The notes under the pieces were generated by a model. That model was not told where the DNA came from. It did no database searches and saw only the letters and a program-made list of their open reading frames with translations. A program made the position numbers and the translations under genes. Below are positions 16,644-56,811 of a DNA stretch of 64,000 nt, in pieces (the stretch's first letter is position 1; every line of letters starts with the position of its first letter). Source of the DNA: Trichosphaerium sp. ATCC 40318 (taxonomy: Eukaryota > Protista > Tubulinea); assembly GCA_038496445.1 (NCBI GenBank), contig JALMLS010000564.1, positions 62,001 through 126,000 of the forward strand, written 5' to 3'.

Positions 16644-17538
16644 TTACAGAATATTACATCGCCAAGAACTCTTTTTCTTTTTTCTTTTTTTCTTATTTGT
16701 AACCTGATCGCTTTTCTTATCAACCATAGCAGCAGGATGAGCACCAACAAGAACAGCATGATTAAATATCCTCTGTACACTACGTCTATCATGCATACTA
16801 CATTGAAAAAACTCACAAGCACCAACACTCCTAACAGCGTCTAAACCTTGTACCATAGAATTACGATTACGGCTTTTTTTAGACCTTGTAGGATCAACCA
16901 AATCAGACTTTGTTCCAACTAAGATTACTGGCTTTGAAGGGCAGTATTTTGTTATTAACTGTGTCCACTTTAAAGTAGAGGTAAGTACGTTGTAAGACAC
17001 ATAAGAATAAACGAGGGAAGTACTGTAGTACCTTGTCAAAAACGGCAATGCTCCGCAAACTGTTTGGGTCTATTAAAGAATAGCATAGAAGGACTACATC
17101 AGGTTTAGGATCGAAAGCCAAAGGATACACGCTACTAAATTGGTCTCCTCCTGCCTAAAAAGTTATAAGCATCCTCTGCGAGTTTAGTGTACGTGTTCCT
17201 TTGCAGAAACGAATGGAAAAGAAGAAACAAGCGCGAAAGGAATTCTTTCGAGGTAAAATCACTTTATACTGCGTATTGTGATATACACTTACAATGTCCC
17301 ATATATTAAGTGTAAAATGAACGCCGTCGATAAGTATATTGATCGGATGGGTATTTATTCCTTTCGAGCTGCTCTCAATAATAGTGCTATCTGAGAGGTT
17401 TACAGCAAACTTCTTGATCATCTCCGTCTTTCCTATTGATAGGCAACACAGTTAATTTCTTTCAAATAACAGAACTCCATACACTCCACACGTACCTACG
17501 CCTGCGTCTCCAAGTACAACACATTTAATAGCGTTCAT
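16644..17538 (-). CDS. divergent Rho/Rac family small GTPase
   Basis: MNAIKCVVLGDAGV|GKT P-loop, LNIWDI|AGG, PVILVGTKSDL, FFQCS, a polybasic tail and the CNIL CaaX box. Confidence 0.92.
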
Positions 17539-17881
17539 CTTGGAGGGTTTTCTCTACTCTTATTATTTTTTTTGATAGGCTGACTTTCGCGCTTTATTAA
17601 CACGTGTGGTCAACGGCAAGTTTGTTTGATCTCAATTTTCTGTTTGCTACTGGGTAATTAAGCAGGATCCATGAATGTAGAACGCGAAACATCACGTGAT
17701 ACTTTTGTTCAGCAATAAGAAGTTTAAAACACTTAATATGAACTTCAAAAGTACTGCGAATGGAAAATATTGCGTCAAAAATCTTTTTTGAAGGAGATTG
17801 ATTATGGGGATGCTTGGTGTCAAAACAAACGAGTTTTCTTTGTTCACACTTACCCAAGTACGTTTCTTTAATCAAAACCAA

Positions 17882-18705
17882 ATGTTTATTCGCAACGTGG
17901 CGGTTGGTATAATGCTTGCGAGCTTATTTGTTCATTGGTAATAGAATATTTGAACTACACGGTTTCTAACGTATTTTAGGTGGCCAAATCAAACCCCTGG
18001 TATGCAGAGAAGAAATATAAGACAATCAAACTTCAAAAGCCTTACTTCGCCTACTAGTCGTTACATTACTATCAACAGCGGCCTATAATCAAAGGACAAA
18101 GCCAATCATAGAGCCAGCGCTTCAGTATCTTGAAGAAAACGAATTGTGGTTGAAAGAGAATGCAAACGTTGGCCCAGACGCCTATAAATTGACAGGAGGA
18201 CGATTTTTAGCAGCAGGTAACATAAACTACGTCAATCTAATCGTTCTTGCTCATCCGTATCGTTTATCGTGTCACTCATGCATATTAATTACCGTGTCAT
18301 ATTTTTTAACGTTATTGTAACCTGCACAGAGCTTATCGGACTTTAGGATTTGGTATCTTTTTAGTAGGTTGCCTACTACTCGCTGTAACACCAATGGGAG
18401 GCGTACGCCTTTTTTAAACGCAAATAGAAATTATATGAAATGAAATAGCTACAATGAAGTCTTTCTGACTTATATTTAGGTTGTCGCTTTGTTTGGTACG
18501 TAAACAAACTATAAAAAAACATGTTTGCAAGCACTTTGGTACAAAAGATGTCTCTGGTCTCATTTTTGGTTTTTTTTTTGCTTTAGGCTTGATATTGATA
18601 TACTGGGTCATGCAACTGAACGATATTCCTTATTCCCCAAAATACCCTGGACCTATATTAGGCGCGTTATTTTTTTCTACATTCCGAACAAACAAACTTT
18701 TCTGA
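17882..18705 (+). CDS. small multi-exon membrane protein, unknown function
   Basis: Spliced model MFIRNVAVGIMLASLFVHW...GGRFLAAGFGIFLVGCLLLAVTPMGGVVALFGLILIYWVMQ...NKLF*, with canonical GT-AG introns and hydrophobic segments. Confidence 0.5.
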
Positions 18706-19542
18706 AGCGGTACATAAATGACTGTACTACTTGTCATCTTATTCTCTTGTTTTTGAAAAAAACTTTGTGGCGGTTCATTTGGGTCGTGGGCACCTTTTTG
18801 GTTTATGAAACGTCAAATTTTTTTTTTCTTCTTTTTTTTGATGATGTTTCGAGAAGATCTTTTTTTAACATCACCTAAAAAAGTTTTTTTCATTTGTTTG
18901 ACACTTCTTTAGCTGTTGGTGGTTCTATACTACTTTATTCTTCCTTTATCGCCGGTTCATGTTGCACAGATAATCGCTATTATTACGACCACCGGTGAAC
19001 AAAAAAAAAAAAAAAAAAAAGTGTACGCTCACGACGTTAACGTTGATGATCGAAACCGAATAAACAATAAAAAGCAGGGTAAAACAAAAAGGAGTTCGGT
19101 AACTACCCTCAAAGTTGGGAAAGTTGCTAACTTGGTTCCTCCCAATTTATAAAAAGAAGTTGTTTCTCAAGTCCAATTATGCATATTGCAATAAATAATA
19201 CATAAATTGTAAAGATATGACACTTTGTCGTAAAGATTTTCCGCAATTTGGCGAATTCTTTTTTTTTGTAGCAAGCGCGGGGTTTAGAAATGCCGTATCT
19301 TATCGTATTAAATCACAACAGCGTACCAATAAGGGCAATTTGAAAACTGCGCGCAATATCGTGTATTCCAGATTTTTGCCTGGCAAGTTTTGCTCTGACC
19401 ACAAATCGCTCGTACATTTGTTCTTTGCAGCGTGTGCATATCAGTACATATTCGTAGCAAGAAAAAACACAATTGAGGAGCTTTAAAAGCACGAACTAAG
19501 ATCTAGCTTAGAACTTCTCCCCGAAAGACCCGAAGCAAACGA

Positions 19543-22083
19543 ATGGATCCTTGGCTAGTACAAAATAAGGTTGGTGACACTATGGAACCACTTCATTTGG
19601 AAGGCTTCGACGACGAGGCGAAGTTTTTGGAAGAGATGCTAGAGGACACCCTTGTTGCTCAAACGACTCAAGAATTACGTGTTCGCAAACCAGACATTAC
19701 TGTGCTCCTTCTACATAAGCCCCGAGGCGGAAAAGGGGTGTGGAAGCAAATCCAAGCCGAGGAGCAAATAAGGGTCACCAAAGGCGTTGGTAAGAAGATG
19801 AAAGTAACTGTGGAGAGTACGAAACAATTTTCGATACAAGACGTGGAGCTACACTTGATTGATGAGGCAGCACCACACTCAAGGGAAGAAAGTGGCCGTT
19901 TCAAGATAGAAAACAATCACCTCAAGCCTAACGGTGATGGTGGTAGTACAGCGGAACTAGAGCTCAAACTATTTCATTTATCCAAAGTGCTGTATTATCA
20001 AGTGAAGGTTAAAACAGCATTGGGTCTACTAACCGGCGTTTCCTGCATTTTTGGTGCCCACAACTCGGGTAAACAACGGTACGCTTTCCAATTAAATATT
20101 TAAATACTCTCTATTATGTTATTGCATTTTTACGTGAGTAACGAAACCGTACAATGCGCGTGGCGACATTTCTGACAAAAAAAAATATCAAACAAAAAGT
20201 TTATTTCTAAAATGTGTTCTTAGGGCTCGTAAAAAAGCTGACAGTGATTCTGGACGTAAACGAAAACGTTTTATGTTTGAGCACGTTGTACCCGGATCGT
20301 TAAATGTACAAGGAACCCTTCATGCACAAAACATTGTTCAATATTCAGATTTGAGACTAAAGACGAATATTAAAGAGCTTACGGATGCCTTGGAGACTGT
20401 AAAGAAGTTACAAGGTAAAAATTTTACCTGGAAGCATAATCAAGTTTTTGACAAAGACGAACCACAAAAACGCGTTATTGGGCTTATTGCCCAAGAGGTG
20501 CAACGGTACGTTTTTTATTTATTTGTTTTATTTTTTGTTTTTTGTTTTTTTGATAAATCGTTTTTTTTGTTTTGAAGGTGTTCACGTATTTTGATGTGTT
20601 GTTGTTTTTTGACATAAATTAGGGTCCTACCTGACGCTGTTTATACTGACGAGCAAGGATTTTTATCTGTTAGTTATGTAGATATGATTCCTATGGTTTT
20701 AGAGGCTCTAAAGCAACATTTGCGTAATTATGATTCTGACAAGCGTTCGCTTAAATCTGATATGGCTGAGATATCCAAACAAGTTGATCAACTCCAACAG
20801 TACAAAGGTGAAAAGGCAGCACAGGTTCGAGCCGAATTAGAAGACCTACAACGTCAGTTAGACTCTATTAAAAAGAAACATAATACTGGCTTCCCATTGA
20901 ACGGTGGTTCTGTTTCTGCTCAGAGGGAATATTTACAACGTATTGCTCAACGGATGAAGGAATTTGGACGTCGGCGGATTCTTCCTGAAGCACAACGACA
21001 AAACGCAAAACTTTCAATTTGTGCAATACAGCGTAATCCTAATGGCGATTTGGATGATTTTTATTTGGTGTGCTATAAGCACGATGGGTTATTACCTGAT
21101 GTAGCAAGTACGACACGCGTCCTTTTTTTTTTTTGTTGTTGTTGGGTTTTCCTTCTTTTCTTCTTTTGTGACGTCATGAACTCAGTTTTATTTTGTACTC
21201 ATGTTATGTAATTTAGCTACTATTGGTAAGGGTCCTCACATGGGCCGCTGTATTTCTATTGGGGGAAGTGGGTCTGATTATACTGGTATTTATACCGCTA
21301 TAGTTGGTATAGATAAGGCTAAACACCCAAATTTTTGTTCTCATGGTGGTATTGTAGCTCGTACGTACTAATTTGGTTAAAACTATTTTTTTTGGTTTGG
21401 GTGCTTTTTTTTGACGTTGTTGCAGTTTTTGATTGGCGTAAATATGGTATGCTTGAAGAGATGAAGCTTATACCTTGCACACCAGTAAAAATAGCAACTA
21501 CTGCCACTGAAGGTAATTTATGGCTTGTTGGGCGCTTTGTGGTCACAAACTTTGACTCTTTTTGGGTGTCAACTGGTCCTCCACCAAGTAAGTTTTTTAA
21601 TTCTCCGCTTTTGAAGAAAACCTTTTTTTTGTTTGCGGTTGTCTTCTAACGCGTTTTTTGCTTTAGGTCAGCAACAACCTAACCAAGAAGCTGCAAATAC
21701 AACGTATCAACAACAAGGCAGAAATGCTGATATTCGTGGGCCACCGTTACATAGCAGTATTCAAGGTTATGGTCCGCCAGGCGCTCAAGCTCAGCCTAAC
21801 GGTGTATCTTATGCTTACCAACCTCCACCACCTGTTCATGGGCGTGGTTATGGTGGCCAACCAAATTATGCTGGCCAAGTTCAGTATGCACATGCTCGTG
21901 GTGGGCAACAAGCTTACGTAAGTTTTTTCGAATAATTCATTTATTTTCTTTTTGTTCAGTTTTCGGAGCTTTGTTTTAACTTGTTTTCTCTAGCAGGACA
22001 TGACCTACGCACAACAACCACAACAAAGGATGCCACAAGCTGCTTGGGCACCAGATCAACAACAAGGATACTCTCAGTGGTAA
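19543..22083 (+). CDS. MYRF/MrfA-like protein: N-terminal beta-rich domain, NLS, peptidase S74 (intramolecular chaperone autocleavage) domain, coiled coil, C-terminal domain, Q/P/G/Y-rich tail
   Basis: Motifs GSLNVQGTLHAQNIVQYSDLRLKTNI...GLIAQEVQRVLPDAV...SVSYVDMIPMVLEALK are a Peptidase_S74/ICA signature with Ser at i and Lys at i+5. A basic stretch RARKK..GRKRKR precedes it. Confidence 0.88.
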
Positions 22084-22422
22084 AGAGTAAAAAAAAATAT
22101 GTAAGAAATAAAAACAAATGTACATAGCCTTTTAAAGCAAAGAACGTCTTTTACGTTTCCGAGTAACCGAGTACGTTTTTTTGAAACAGTTATCCATGCA
22201 TTTTCTTTATTATTTAAACCAACCATGTCAATTTTATCCTCTCTCCAGTCAACCTCCGCATTTATTTTGTATGTATGTATACGTATTGTTATATAATCTA
22301 TTTTCTGTGAGGCGGGTATGTACAGCCGTCAATATTGGTCATTTTTAAAGCGAATATCCAAGAATTTTGTTGTGCGAAATTTGGACTTCCGGCTTACTTG
22401 TAATTGCTGTTTCTTGTTAAAG

Positions 22423-24300
22423 ATGAAACGTGCTGCGCCAACGAAGGTTACAGCGCCCGTAGCTAAGAAACAAAAACTTCTTTCATTTGCACCGCTTTCT
22501 AAGACTGGTGGTACAGTTATTGGTGGTACCGTTACAACCGTAAGTAAGGAAAACGGCTCTTTATCAACAAACTCGACAGAAAGCACCGAAAAAAGACCGA
22601 CTGGCGTCACGACAATTGAAACAAACGGCGTATCAGGCTCTAAACTGGAAAATGGAAAAACGACCGACGTGAGCTTAACAAAGTCCGTAGAGAGCGTAGA
22701 TGACTCAAAATCAATAGACTCATCGCAAGGAGGAGAGAATATAACGATAAAAACGGAGAATAACAAAGTTATAAAGCCAAAAACTCAAGTCGAAGCAAAA
22801 ACTCAATGCGCAAAGGATATACAAGATATTATAATTAATATCGTATCTCCAGCGATATTATCACAGATAGTTCAATGCCTTATACTATCTGCATGTACAA
22901 TATGCCGTAAACGTGGTAAACTAGCTAATACATTAACATGCGACTCTGAGAAGTGTAAATCAAAGATCTTGGAGGATATACCTGGTCTTATAATTGATTC
23001 TCATGGTAAAACATGGATGGGACGTTATGTGCCTTTTGTACGTGATAAGATGGCTCCTTTCCCACCTAAGAAGTTGGCGGCTTGTTATAAGAAACTATCT
23101 AATCAGCTTCATGGTCCTTTTCTAAAGTCTATCATTGCAAGGACTTGTTTAAGTCATGGTAAAGAAGCACATTGTAGAGTTATAACAGAACATGGTAAAT
23201 TATCTTGTGGAGCGAATGCATGTCGACAGTATTCTAAGTATGTACCTGATCAGCTTGCTTTAATGATAAATGGTGCTCTTAAAAAGATTGACAGGGATAT
23301 TGCTGTTTTATTTCCACAGAAGGTACTTTGCCACTTTACATATAATCTCTTCACTCGTTATATTATTACTACTCTCTTCCCTCTTCTCTCTTCTATCTTG
23401 TCGTTTTTACAAATTGTTGTTGTACCTACAATCTCTTCATCTTCGAAACAAATACAACGCACTTACAACAAAAAAATTTCCGCATGAGTTGAAGTTTCTT
23501 CGTTGGTGATGTCTTCTTATATCATCGCTTTGTATATGCAATCTATCTTTGTAATATTATGGAGAAAAAACAAAAAGTAAATAATATCCTAGGGTGACAT
23601 TAGAGCAAGGGAGATAAGCAGTAGTCATCATGGCATTGGTAAAAAAGTACAACAGAAAAAGAGATCGTCACCCAACAGATCAACACATGAAACCAGTTCA
23701 CGGGTATCAAAGGAAGTCGAACACATGGTAAATAATCCTATCCACATTAATCACGTGGTTAAAACGTTATTCATTGTAAGTACTTATTATCTCTTTACAG
23801 CACAAACAGTTTTCTTCTTTGTTGCATGCGAAAAAGAATACAAGAAAGACAACTGAAGCTATTCTTATGGATAAGTTGAACGCAGCAAATGATGAGATTA
23901 TAGCATTAAAGGAGGTGTTAGATATGCATAAAAAACAGTCTGAGAGTTGGAAACAATCTCATGATTCTGTAAAACTGTTATTAGATAAAGAACGGCGGAC
24001 TGTTTCTTTATTGAAGAAAACGATTGCATCTAATGAAAGTACAATACAGAAACTTGAAAGAGAAAAAGCAGCGAATAAGAAGGCTATCAAGGAGGCTAAA
24101 AAACAAGCGGTATGTGTTATTTTTATGTTTCTCCATACCACCTCACTTTCAAGGTTTTACACTCACTTTTTTTCGGACCCACGTGCTTAGTGAATCTTAG
24201 TTTTTTCTTCTTTTTTTTTTTTGTTTTATTTTTTGTTTTCTTGAAATGTTCTTGAAACTGACGGAGTTTTTGTTGCTACAGAAGCTTGAAGAAACAGAAA
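22423..24300 (+). CDS. hypothetical protein with S/T-rich N-terminus, two Cys clusters and a C-terminal coiled coil
   Basis: Long first exon (MKRAAPTK..AKKQK; CTICRKR...CDSEKC; CLSH...CGANAC) and a coiled-coil exon at 23819-24110. The 3' end is approximate. Confidence 0.6.
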
Positions 24301-55317: not shown

Positions 55318-56811
55318 TTACAAACAAATATTAAGTACACCAGCACCATGCAAAGCATCGATACCTTCACGTGTAACAGCTGTATTAGTCAAATTTATCT
55401 TCTTCACACCAGCCAGCGCTTTTACACCTTTATCAGTCACTTTTGTATGTGAAAGATCAATTGTATGAACACCAGCTAATGCCCTAATACCTTCATCTGT
55501 TATTTTTTTACACTTCTTTAAATCGATAGAATGCACGCCAGCCAATGCCCTTAGACCCTCATCTGCTATTTCGCATTTAGTCAATTCGATGGTGTGTACA
55601 CCAGCCAATTGTTTAAAGCCATCATCAGTTATTTTCTGGCAAAAACTCAAGTAAATTGCATGTACACCTTTCAATGCCTTGACACCTTCATCTGTTATAG
55701 TGGAGCAAAACCTTAAAAAGATGGTATGTACACCTGCCAAGGCCATTATACCATTGTCTGTTATTTCGTTACAGCCAATCAAGTCAATAGTATGTACACC
55801 TGCGAGCGCTTTTAGCCCCTCATCTGTTATTTTTGTCCTTGTTATCCTGATTTCAAATGCACCAGCCAATGCCTTGAAACCTGTATCTGATATGCCTTCA
55901 CATTTGTCCAATACGATGGTATGTACGCCCTTTAATGCCTTAATACCTTCATCACCCACATTTGTTCTTGATAAATTGATATTATGTACACCCTTTAATG
56001 CCTTAATGCCTGAATCCGTTATACATTCACAATGGTATAAGTTTATAGTATGTACGCCAGTCAATGTCTTTATACTCTCATCTGTTATTTGGCATTCAGT
56101 CAAGTCGATAGTGTGCACACCCTTTAATGCCTTGACACCTTTATCAGTCACGTTTGTGTGCGATAAATTAATGTTATGTACGCCAGCTAACGCCTTTATG
56201 CCTTCATCTGTTATGCTCTGACAAAATATCAGACTGATGGTGTGTACGCCAGCCAATGTCTTTATACTCTCATCTGTTATTTTGCATTCACTCAAGTTGA
56301 TAGTGTGCACACCCTTTAATGCCTTGACGCCTTCATCGTCCACAGAACTGAATGACAAATCAATTCTGTGGACACCGGTCAACGCTTTTAAACCTTCGTG
56401 AGTAAACATTTTACATCTCCGCATGTTGATGGTATGTACTCCAGCCAACGCCTTGAGAACTTCATTACTAACATTGGTGCGAGAGACATCTATGTCGCGA
56501 CAACCCCTCAAGTCTATTGATGTTAAACTCGCAACTAAGCGTCGGCGATCTTTTGTATCACTATTACCAAGACCGTCCAATAAAATGCGTGTGTTTAGAA
56601 GTAAGGGGCTACCAGACAGACTTTTTAATTCGCTTATACTTTTAACCGATATCCAACCATATCCCACGTGGCTGTGGACTATATCTCGCAAGAAACGGCA
56701 TGTTTGGGCTGAACGGAGTGTAAACTTGCCTTGTTTTAGAATATGGACTATCATTTCAACTGGGAGTGATACGAGGTGAATCGGAGACTTGCTTGCGCCG
56801 TTGTTCTCCAT
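55318..56811 (-). CDS. intronless F-box + leucine-rich repeat protein (~15 repeats of LxGVHTIxLxxCxITDEGxKA)
   Basis: F-box LVSLPVEMIVHIL...AQTCRFLR followed by highly regular 24-25 aa LRRs in one uninterrupted 497-aa ORF. Confidence 0.93.
   Translation of the reverse strand: MENNGASKSPIHLVSLPVEMIVHILKQGKFTLRSAQTCRFLRDIVHSHVGYGWISVKSISELKSLSGSPLLLNTRILLDGLGNSDTKDRRRLVASLTSIDLRGCRDIDVSRTNVSNEVLKALAGVHTINMRRCKMFTHEGLKALTGVHRIDLSFSSVDDEGVKALKGVHTINLSECKITDESIKTLAGVHTISLIFCQSITDEGIKALAGVHNINLSHTNVTDKGVKALKGVHTIDLTECQITDESIKTLTGVHTINLYHCECITDSGIKALKGVHNINLSRTNVGDEGIKALKGVHTIVLDKCEGISDTGFKALAGAFEIRITRTKITDEGLKALAGVHTIDLIGCNEITDNGIMALAGVHTIFLRFCSTITDEGVKALKGVHAIYLSFCQKITDDGFKQLAGVHTIELTKCEIADEGLRALAGVHSIDLKKCKKITDEGIRALAGVHTIDLSHTKVTDKGVKALAGVKKINLTNTAVTREGIDALHGAGVLNICL

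Follow-up and report, generated by a model that had tools for sequence, protein, structure and literature searches.

S74-driven self-release in eukaryotes is known only for MYRF and MrfA, in which an Ndt80-type factor comes off the ER membrane in this way. The gene at 19543-22083 (+) of the window, by which we mean the whole stretch of 64,000 nucleotides of Trichosphaerium sp. ATCC 40318 that was analysed, raises the question of whether such a switch could also work with another cargo and without a membrane.

The gene has seven exons and encodes a protein of 649 aa, and transcript contigs show it to be spliced, intact and transcribed. All six introns are of the GT..AG type. The database protein P0185 (649 aa, from the MMETSP-derived transcript L001) corresponds to the seven-exon splice, with none of the 1950 coding bases differing, and its MMETSP origin indicates a marine microbial eukaryote. 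No transcript contig has a joint to an upstream exon. The start at 19543 and the stop codon at the end of the frame are where an earlier, sequence-only reading of this DNA had put them. The features are as follows.

19416-19542, + strand: 5' UTR (transcript contigs start at 19416-19438; 5' end of L001 identical to the window; in-frame stop at 19504-19506)
19543-19677, + strand: acidic N-terminal stretch, aa 1-45 (pI 4.05, 12 D+E)
19678-20078, + strand: Ig-like N-domain, aa 46-178, with motifs HKPRGGKG, RVTKGVGKK and HNSGKQ, ending at the end of exon 1 (family HMM, E 2.9e-42; 54-member alignment; AF2 model)
20079-20223, + strand: intron 1, GT..AG (joint 20077/20223 in runs X1, X2, X3 and X5)
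20224-20275, + strand: basic NLS-like stretch RARKKADSDSGRKRKR, within aa 179-196, pI 11.8 (translation; KKRK-type cluster in the same linker of relatives)
20276-20344, + strand: stalk before the predicted cleavage site, aa 197-219, FEHVVPGSLNVQGTLHAQNIVQY (aligns to the stretch ahead of the MYRF ICA in 7dc3 and to the family consensus PGSLxVxGxVRA)
20345-20362, + strand: S-D-L-R-L-K, residues 220-225, with the putative catalytic Ser220/Lys225 dyad (columns invariant in 46 family S74 domains)
20345-20505, + strand: Peptidase_S74 domain, first part, to the end of exon 2 (PF13884, 5e-15 on exon 2)
20506-20622, + strand: intron 2, interrupting the S74 domain (contig pieces stop at 20504 and restart at 20622; adjacent in X2, X3 and X5 records)
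20623-20734, + strand: remainder of the S74/ICA domain, to ~aa 310, VLPDAVYTDEQGFLSVSYVDMIPMVLEALKQ (Pfam aa 220-280; alignment of the family profile to phage 6f45 reaches profile position 121)
20735-20908, + strand: coiled-coil-like helical region, ~aa 311-368 (only coiled-coil noise hits in Pfam/NCBIfam scans)
20909-21107, + strand: first part of the C-domain, a long helix (aa 369-398) and the first strands (C-domain alignment and HMM; predicted structure model)
21108-21216, + strand: intron 3, T-rich (X2 record 8 has 21217 directly after 21107)
21217-21360, + strand: exon 4, aa 435-482, part of the C-domain (contigs of X1, X2 and X5; P0185/L001)
21361-21425, + strand: intron 4 (joint 21360/21426)
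21426-21587, + strand: exon 5, final C-domain strands (transcript joints; C-domain alignment)
21588-21666, + strand: intron 5 (joint 21587/21667)
21667-21917, + strand: exon 6, end of the C-domain (to aa 540), then Q/P/G/A/Y-rich low-complexity tail (translation)
21918-21993, + strand: intron 6, 76 nt (joint 21917/21994 in all four runs)
21994-22083, + strand: exon 7, end of the tail and stop codon 22081-22083 (translation)
22084-22128, + strand: 3' UTR (contigs end at ~22115-22128; 3' end of L001)

The single intron 21108-21426 of the sequence-only reading was a mistake, and the coding exon of 144 nt at 21217-21360, flanked by introns 21108-21216 and 21361-21425, had been missed; it is carried by transcript contigs of three studies (runs X1, X2, X5) and by L001. 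That reading had named an RNA-backed exon encoding a transmembrane (TM) helix in this region as the finding that would speak against it. The exon is there in the RNA, but the TM helix is not: the exon is not hydrophobic, with a maximum Kyte-Doolittle value of 0.79, and it aligns to conserved C-domain columns of the related proteins P0157 and P0160-P0162. The read-through frame of intron 3 is hydrophobic, yet this intron is removed by splicing. Intron 6 is read through in the database protein P0001 (625 aa, ending ...AYVSFFE), whose contig of 2240 nt differs by 76 from the 2164 nt of L001.

The order of the parts in the protein is an acidic N-terminus, the Ig-like N-domain, the NLS-like cluster, the stalk, S74, a coiled-coil-like helix, a β-sandwich C-domain and a Q/P/G/Y-rich tail. 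Peptidase_S74 (PF13884) matches aa 220-280 of the whole protein with 64.2 bits and E 1.3e-17, and exon 2 alone reaches 56 bits (5e-15); the Pfam cut-off is 22 bits, and the match is far beyond chance. The sequence-only reading was right about this domain and its surroundings. The S-D-L-R-L-K motif that it described as intact lies inside the match, the bridge before it is present as PGSLNVQGTLHAQNIVQY, the NLS-like stretch is found ahead of it (RARKKADSDSGRKRKR, aa 179-194, with the basic cluster RKK...RKRKR at aa 181-194), and the coiled coil that it placed after S74 is seen as a helical, coiled-coil-like stretch, with weak coiled-coil noise hits only. The cut is predicted to fall between Y219 and S220. 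All 17 columns that are invariant among 46 S74 domains of the family are kept, including S220, D221, R223 and K225.

In its S74 domain the protein also resembles the phage tailspike and tail-fibre chaperones (the endosialidase CIMCD and the S16 long tail fibre, 6f45), with which it shares the SDxRxK and GLIAQEV motifs. When the family's S74 profile was compared with the PDB, the S16 tail fibre was found at 3.7e-11 (profile positions 18-121) and the MYRF ICA (7dc3), also homologous, at 1.6e-7; the phage chaperone outscores the MYRF domain and is the best sequence match among solved structures. Contrary to the phage chaperones, the gene of the window is eukaryotic with six spliceosomal introns, one of them within S74, and the domain is found in the middle of the protein and not at the C-terminus as in phage tailspikes. 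Upstream of it there is an Ig-like domain and an NLS-like cluster, where the phage proteins have a fibre or a β-helix.

The likeness to MYRF and MrfA extends to the order of the parts: an N-terminal cargo, an NLS-like cluster, a stalk, S74 with a Ser-x4-Lys dyad and a helical region. The cargo itself is different. The AF2 model of the N-domain is an Ig-like β-sandwich of ~135 aa with nine strands (pLDDT 90), and the family's invariant columns R77, G83, K84 and G176 are all present in it (54-member alignment). Searches of the N-domain against Pfam and NCBIfam (per exon), and against the PDB with phmmer and with profiles, gave chance-level hits only. NDT80_PhoG (PF05224-type) was found neither on exon 1 at E<=1, nor in 27 scanned relatives, nor in 54 N-domains. 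The N-domain profile brought up no MYRF or Ndt80 chain in the PDB, and the DNA-binding domains of MYRF and Ndt80 are absent from the top 50 structural matches of the model. Foldseek (PDB) and the ESM Atlas shape search returned generic Ig-like matches, with TM-scores up to 0.58. Pfam, PDB-profile and structural searches thus set the domain apart, and it is not of the Ndt80/MYRF type. ESM Atlas feature searches with the N-domain and the C-domain gave scores of 0.77-0.81, a level also reached by shuffled sequences, and were rejected.

MRF_C1 (PF13887) and MRF_C2 (PF13888) are absent as well: PF13884 is the only Pfam match on the whole protein at E<=0.01, and neither of the two appears exon-wise at E<=1. 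The Pfam check proposed by the sequence-only reading thus came out positive for PF13884 and negative for PF13887, and its labels "MYRF-like" and "Ndt80-type factor" have to be dropped. The idea behind them, that the protein is a genuine member of the MYRF/MrfA type which sets free an Ndt80-type DNA-binding domain and differs only in the loss of its TM helix, could draw on the common order from cargo to coiled coil and on the homology of S74 to the MYRF ICA. With no match to NDT80_PhoG, MRF_C1 or MRF_C2 in the protein or its relatives, and with the PDB and structural searches of the N-domain void of MYRF and Ndt80, it is very improbable.

The N-domain is basic (pI 9.7), with the conserved motifs HKPRGxKG, RVTKGxGKK and HNSGK, and it adjoins the acidic stretch at aa 1-45 (pI 4.05), which may be an activation-type region. 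It is conceivable that the domain is neither nuclear nor DNA-binding but an Ig-like domain of the cytoplasm that binds proteins or lipids, for instance at the cytoskeleton or on vesicles, and that the basic cluster is no NLS but a patch for binding membranes or proteins. We regard this as quite unlikely, as a monopartite NLS motif of the KKRK type returns even in members of the family that have diverged widely; the conserved basic motifs with the adjoining acidic N-terminus, and the architecture parallel to that of MYRF/MrfA, also argue against it.

The C-terminal half holds a further difference from MYRF and MrfA, which have a TM tether, as do most relatives of the protein after S74. A 19-residue Kyte-Doolittle scan, the only method used here, found no TM-like segment in the 649 aa: the best mean is 1.38, within the N-domain, and C-terminal of S220 the maximum is 1.13, as compared to 1.9-3.5 in TM-bearing relatives. 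The protein is thus predicted to be of a cytosolic type, with neither signal-like nor TM segments, and by this hydropathy scan the claim of the sequence-only reading that there is no membrane anchor holds. So do its claims of an unrecognised globular domain, since no database recognises the C-domain, and of a Q/P/G/Y-rich tail, which covers aa 541-649 and is rich in Q, P, A, G and Y. The C-domain model is moderate (pLDDT 69.5; of five models, one was good), and no structure is clearly related to it. It predicts a β-sandwich which is unique to a small clade including the protein of the window; together with the low-complexity tail it makes a C-terminus unlike that of MYRF/MrfA. A word-indexed search with aa 375-545 returned only the protein itself, and the N-to-C alignment, used as a profile, drew so many candidates that the search yielded no further relative.

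For the N-domain as for the C-domain, the nearest relatives are proteins in which the two are joined without any S74: P0157, P0160, P0161 and P0162, and the metagenome loci L012-L014 (31-35% identity overall). They form one clade with the protein of the window (support 99/96); in them, too, HNSGKQ is followed by the same basic stretch and the tail is similarly rich in P, G and Y, but they have neither S74 nor the coiled coil, so self-cleavage of the S74 kind is impossible there. This implies that the N- and C-domains can function together in one chain without cleavage, and the C-domain may be a partner in function rather than a tether. One could go further and see S74 in our protein as a relic, or as non-cleaving, the protein working intact as an N- plus C-domain factor with S74 and the coiled coil as an oligomerisation spacer that is being lost. 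The sister clade (P0157, P0160, P0161, P0162, L012, L014), which lost S74 and the coiled coil and kept the N-domain, basic stretch, C-domain and tail, would fit this, and so would the long branch of the S74 domain in the S74 tree (1.29, median 0.51). Against it stand the 17 conserved S74 positions with the dyad among them, a Pfam score of 64 bits where 22 would suffice, a reading frame unbroken across the intron inside the domain and the transcription of the gene; we find the relic unlikely. In trees of the N-domain and of S74 alike, the protein falls into the same larger cluster, so its S74 was inherited and not gained a second time.

The N-domain belongs to a wider eukaryotic family, whose plan is an N-domain, a KKRK cluster, S74, a coiled coil and a variable C-terminal module. 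The N-domain HMM matched 75 of 184 fetched proteins at E<=1e-3, and 56 of them at E<1e-20. At least 56 database proteins, some of them from Amoebozoa, therefore share the domain, and almost all of them combine it with S74 and a cluster of the KKRK type; the cluster lies between the two in 37 of 46 members, and 7 of the remaining 9 were unscored. One to three strongly hydrophobic segments follow S74 in 32 of the 56 members, and C-terminal TM segments are lacking in the protein of the window and about 11 other full-length S74-bearing members. Other C-terminal modules are C2, PH+IQ, fascin and a lipase-like α/β-hydrolase, PF26147, a name that for the module of P0151 came from an ESM Atlas feature search. 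Such variation fits a scheme of cargo, NLS, S74 and anchor. Two proteins of Planoprotostelium fungivorum annotated as "cell wall surface anchor family protein" (P0016, P0038) and a Stereomyxa ramosa protein from MMETSP0439 (P0003) have the same N-domain, KKRK cluster, S74 and coiled coil (N-domain HMM E 1e-45 to 1e-52; 35-36% identity to our protein over about half its length). Their C-terminal ends differ, with two TM segments in P0016 and P0038 and a fascin domain in P0003, where our protein has the C-domain and tail. We found no family name for proteins of this type and no description of the N-domain/S74 family in the literature. Amoebozoa proteins with NDT80, S74 and TM are mentioned in PMC13294678, but these have a different architecture. 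Pattern-based scans of 185,579 prokaryotic genomes and of IMG/VR viral contigs for the hallmark motifs of the N-domain (12-sequence alignment) gave no hit, which excludes only relatives that carry those motifs. Three JGI transcripts that might have been paralogues in this organism turned out to stem from other samples.

We give a probability of about one half to the following account as a whole, that a trimerising S74 domain cuts itself and releases a nuclear N-fragment, with the C-fragment in the place of a tether. Three chains would come together through their S74 domains and coiled coils in the manner of phage tailspikes and MYRF/MrfA, and assembly would trigger the cut between Y219 and S220. 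The trimeric fragment of ~25 kDa set free in this way (acidic stretch, Ig-like domain and NLS) would enter the nucleus, where it would most likely bind specific sequences or chromatin. The C-fragment of ~48 kDa (S74, coiled coil, C-domain and low-complexity tail) would take the place of the TM helices of most relatives, and may bar the uncleaved precursor from the nucleus or time the trimerisation. The non-membrane holding module proposed by the sequence-only reading stands as plausible, given that the relatives carry interchangeable C-terminal modules (TM helices, C2, PH, fascin, lipase-like α/β-hydrolase).

The self-cleavage mechanism has been described for MrfA and MYRF (PMC3828593, PMC3742443, PMC3742440). 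The ancestral role of S74, in tailspikes, is that of a folding and trimerising chaperone, and cleavage of MrfA also appears to be constitutive (PMC3828593). It is therefore conceivable that S74 is a phage-style chaperone and nothing else, which folds and trimerises the Ig-like N-domain and cuts itself off constitutively, with no tether or regulation and with the C-fragment doing a separate job or being degraded. The solubility of the protein in the hydropathy scan and the preference of the S74 profile for the phage ICA over that of MYRF would agree with this. However, the S74-less relatives have kept the C-domain and tail along with the N-domain, which implies that the C-terminal part is no disposable pro-region, and the C-terminal modules of the family are mostly membrane-, lipid- or cytoskeleton-binding (fascin), which suggests that localisation matters. 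A chaperone-only role thus appears rather unlikely.

Whatever the fate of the fragments, the locus points to a sizeable protist family with the same phage-derived cutter, a different cargo domain and many C-terminal modules, several of them soluble. If cleavage and nuclear entry are true, the ICA switch would be a portable module and no peculiarity of MYRF, and the list of Ig-fold DNA-binding domains, which is growing fast, would have one more candidate. One clade would also offer a natural series, from membrane-tethered proteins through soluble ones with S74 to soluble ones that lack it, in which the contributions of the tether and of the cleavage could be separated. More tentatively, and less likely than not, the family could be a second, independent class of S74-released eukaryotic factors with a new Ig-like DNA-binding domain and interchangeable holding modules. 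In our protein a soluble β-sandwich and a prion-like tail would then replace the membrane as the site of holding or of gating the trimerisation, and the protein would be a surviving intermediate of a clade that later dropped S74. Judged from one type of C-terminal domain, the family may also reach into fungi.

Transcript contigs revealed that the S74 gene of the window is intact and transcribed, and that its coding part is spliced together from seven exons. The region is eukaryotic in character, with short T-rich introns and GT..AG borders, and the reading frame was assembled from these exons:

19543-20078, 20224-20505, 20623-21107, 21217-21360, 21426-21587, 21667-21917, 21994-22083; + strand; exons 1 to 7 of the S74 gene

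Joined, they give a 1950-nt reading frame of 649 residues. We aligned contigs from four public sequencing runs (three studies) to window 17000-22700; the RNA label of these runs is a guess, and the splicing in the contigs is what mRNA gives. Of the six splice joints, four are listed directly in the contigs, and the joints 20504/20622 and 21107/21217 were seen as adjoining contig pieces beside T-runs skipped in the alignment. The transcripts end at 19416-19438 (5') and near 22115-22128 (3'), with no upstream exon seen in the contigs of the four runs. The database protein P0185 (649 aa), encoded by an MMETSP-derived transcript (locus L001), is identical to the seven-exon product, and its coding sequence equals the window in 1950 of 1950 bases. 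The sequence-only reading had placed a single long intron at 21108-21426; this is wrong, because both P0185/L001 and contigs of the runs X1, X2 and X5 carry the 144-nt exon 21217-21360. The hydrophobic frames noted in that interval do belong to true intron sequence when it is read through, but the middle of the interval is coding. Apart from this one missed exon, the observation is real.

The sequence of another database protein, P0001 (625 aa), finishes with ...AYVSFFE, which is a read-through of intron 6 (21918-21993), and its contig is longer than L001 by exactly 76 nt, the length of that intron. P0001 probably reflects an intron-6-retaining transcript, an isoform whose low-complexity tail would be shorter by 29 residues. 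Transcripts of at least 99% identity to window 19300-22300 occur in X1, X2 and X5, filed under three organism labels (A, B and C), and the large runs of organism B have low depth over this region. The source protist may be a minor component of some runs, for instance an associate or a contaminant.

The motif S-D-L-R-L-K is intact at residues 220-225 (window 20345-20362) and lies inside a Peptidase_S74 match of 64 bits (E 1.3e-17, cut-off 22). The domain keeps all 17 columns that are invariant among 46 relatives, including the S220/K225 dyad. As described from the sequence, the motif is preceded by a stalk, PGSLNVQGTLHAQNIVQY, and a basic stretch, RARKKADSDSGRKRKR, and followed by a coiled-coil-like helical segment, for which the scans gave just coiled-coil noise matches. 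The tail is rich in Q, P, G and Y as well, the last 109 residues being 21% Q, about 13% each P, G and A, and 9% Y. The hydropathy scan found no TM-like segment in the protein: the maximum over 19 residues is 1.38 overall and 1.13 C-terminal of S220. Exon 4, in the interval 21108-21426 where a TM-encoding exon had been considered, reaches 0.79.

The label MYRF-like, Ndt80-type is unsupported. MRF_C1 and MRF_C2 are absent from the protein in the Pfam scan, and sequence searches of Pfam, NCBIfam and PDB with exon 1 (178 aa) gave no match. Searched exhaustively with phmmer, 1.84 billion representatives gave 1473 matches to exon 2 at E<=0.001. The best full-length matches are without Ndt80; what they have in common is a conserved domain of about 140 aa at the N-terminus, marked by HKPRGSKG.W, RVTKGKGKRLK, ELKL..K.LQF and THNSGK. 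An HMM of this N-domain matched 75 of 184 fetched proteins (E<=1e-3), 56 of them at E<1e-20. NDT80_PhoG was found in none of 27 family members scanned, no Pfam family recurred among 54 N-domains, and the N-domain profile found nothing in the PDB. The 54-sequence alignment yielded a confident model (pLDDT 90, pTM 0.79), an Ig-like sandwich of nine strands. Structural searches with it gave generic Ig-like matches alone (Foldseek TM-scores <=0.45), and the MYRF and Ndt80 folds were missing from the top 50. With the S74 profile of the family, the phage S16 tail-fibre chaperone 6f45 scores better (3.7e-11) than the MYRF ICA domain 7dc3 (1.6e-7); the S74 domains are therefore homologous. On present evidence the family is not nested within MYRF.

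The named members with N-domain and S74 are Amoebozoa: Planoprotostelium fungivorum, whose proteins carry the annotation "cell wall surface anchor family protein", and Stereomyxa ramosa. Among the other members are many unnamed transcripts and metagenome genes. In 37 of 46 members (7 of the other 9 unscored) a KKRK-type cluster separates the two domains. The variable part is C-terminal of S74 and its helix: 32 of 56 members show between one and three strongly hydrophobic segments there, some with a C2 domain in between, one has PH and IQ domains and one a fascin domain. The members of one subgroup, about 1000 aa long (P0151, P0152, P0024, P0153-P0155; L006-L008), have the N-domain, KKRK cluster and S74 followed by a PF26147 (YMC0/YMC35-type) alpha/beta-hydrolase, and no TM segment. 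This domain type is commonest in Mucoromycota, and the family may through this subgroup include Mucoromycota-like fungi. A WRKY-domain gene adjoins one contig of the subgroup. Since other members carry S74 without a TM segment, soluble S74 proteins are not unique to the window. The hallmark motifs of the N-domain were not found in 185,579 prokaryotic genomes or in IMG/VR viral contigs, and the gene of the window has an intron inside S74; both points speak against recent descent from a phage or bacterium. We found no description of the family in the literature.

Residues 369-540 form a conserved C-domain of about 170 aa, found among the fetched proteins only in P0157, P0160, P0161 and P0162 besides the query (E 1e-18 to 1e-22). 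A metagenome scan gave three further loci, two of which were read. The relatives read have the N-domain, a basic stretch, the C-domain and a P/G/Y-rich tail, with neither S74 nor coiled coil. These S74-less genes (the four proteins, L012:509-3178 and L014) are mostly GC-rich and intron-poor, and P0162 is encoded by a single ORF within a metagenome contig of 292 kb. In the midpoint-rooted N-domain tree, with P0162 left out, the query is sister to three S74-less proteins (support 99/96 and 100/95), and this group adjoins the hydrolase subgroup. The S74 tree puts the query, on a long branch, in the same larger cluster (94/79). The simplest reading of the trees is that S74 would have been inherited in the lineage of the window, with a single loss in the sister lineage. 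Within the data reached, only the gene of the window combines N-domain, S74 and C-domain.

Trimerisation and self-cleavage are established for S74 in tailspikes, MrfA and MYRF (PMC3828593, PMC3742443, PMC3742440). By analogy, the protein would trimerise and be cut at the predicted site Y219|S220, which would set free a trimer of ~25-kDa fragments, in which an acidic N-terminus (pI 4.05) is followed by a basic Ig-like domain (pI 9.7) and then an NLS-like cluster. A nuclear function and DNA binding of this fragment are plausible because of its conserved basic motifs, the recurrence of the KKRK cluster and the activation-region-like acidic N-terminus. The weakest step is a holding or gating role for the C-terminal fragment. 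It would suit equally well that the C-domain is a functional partner of the N-domain, as the two are permanently joined in the S74-less relatives, whereas the modular C-termini across the family speak for holding or gating. The soluble S74 switch survives as a hypothesis, now placed within a wider family.

The region upstream of the S74 gene may hold two genes, one on each strand. The neighbour at 17032-18100 is spliced and transcribed, with CT..AC-type joints (minus strand) at 17153/17292 and 17431/17495, and GT..AG joints were seen at 17936/17979 and 18214/18345. Two further ORFs were listed in the window:

22318-23487; + strand; 389-aa ORF directly downstream, Lys/Ser/Thr-rich with Cys-rich stretches
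55318-56811; - strand; 497-aa single-exon ORF with many LRR_6 repeats (E 3e-49) and a weak F-box-like N-terminus

The 389-aa ORF has no Pfam match, and the transcript contigs cover it scantly.
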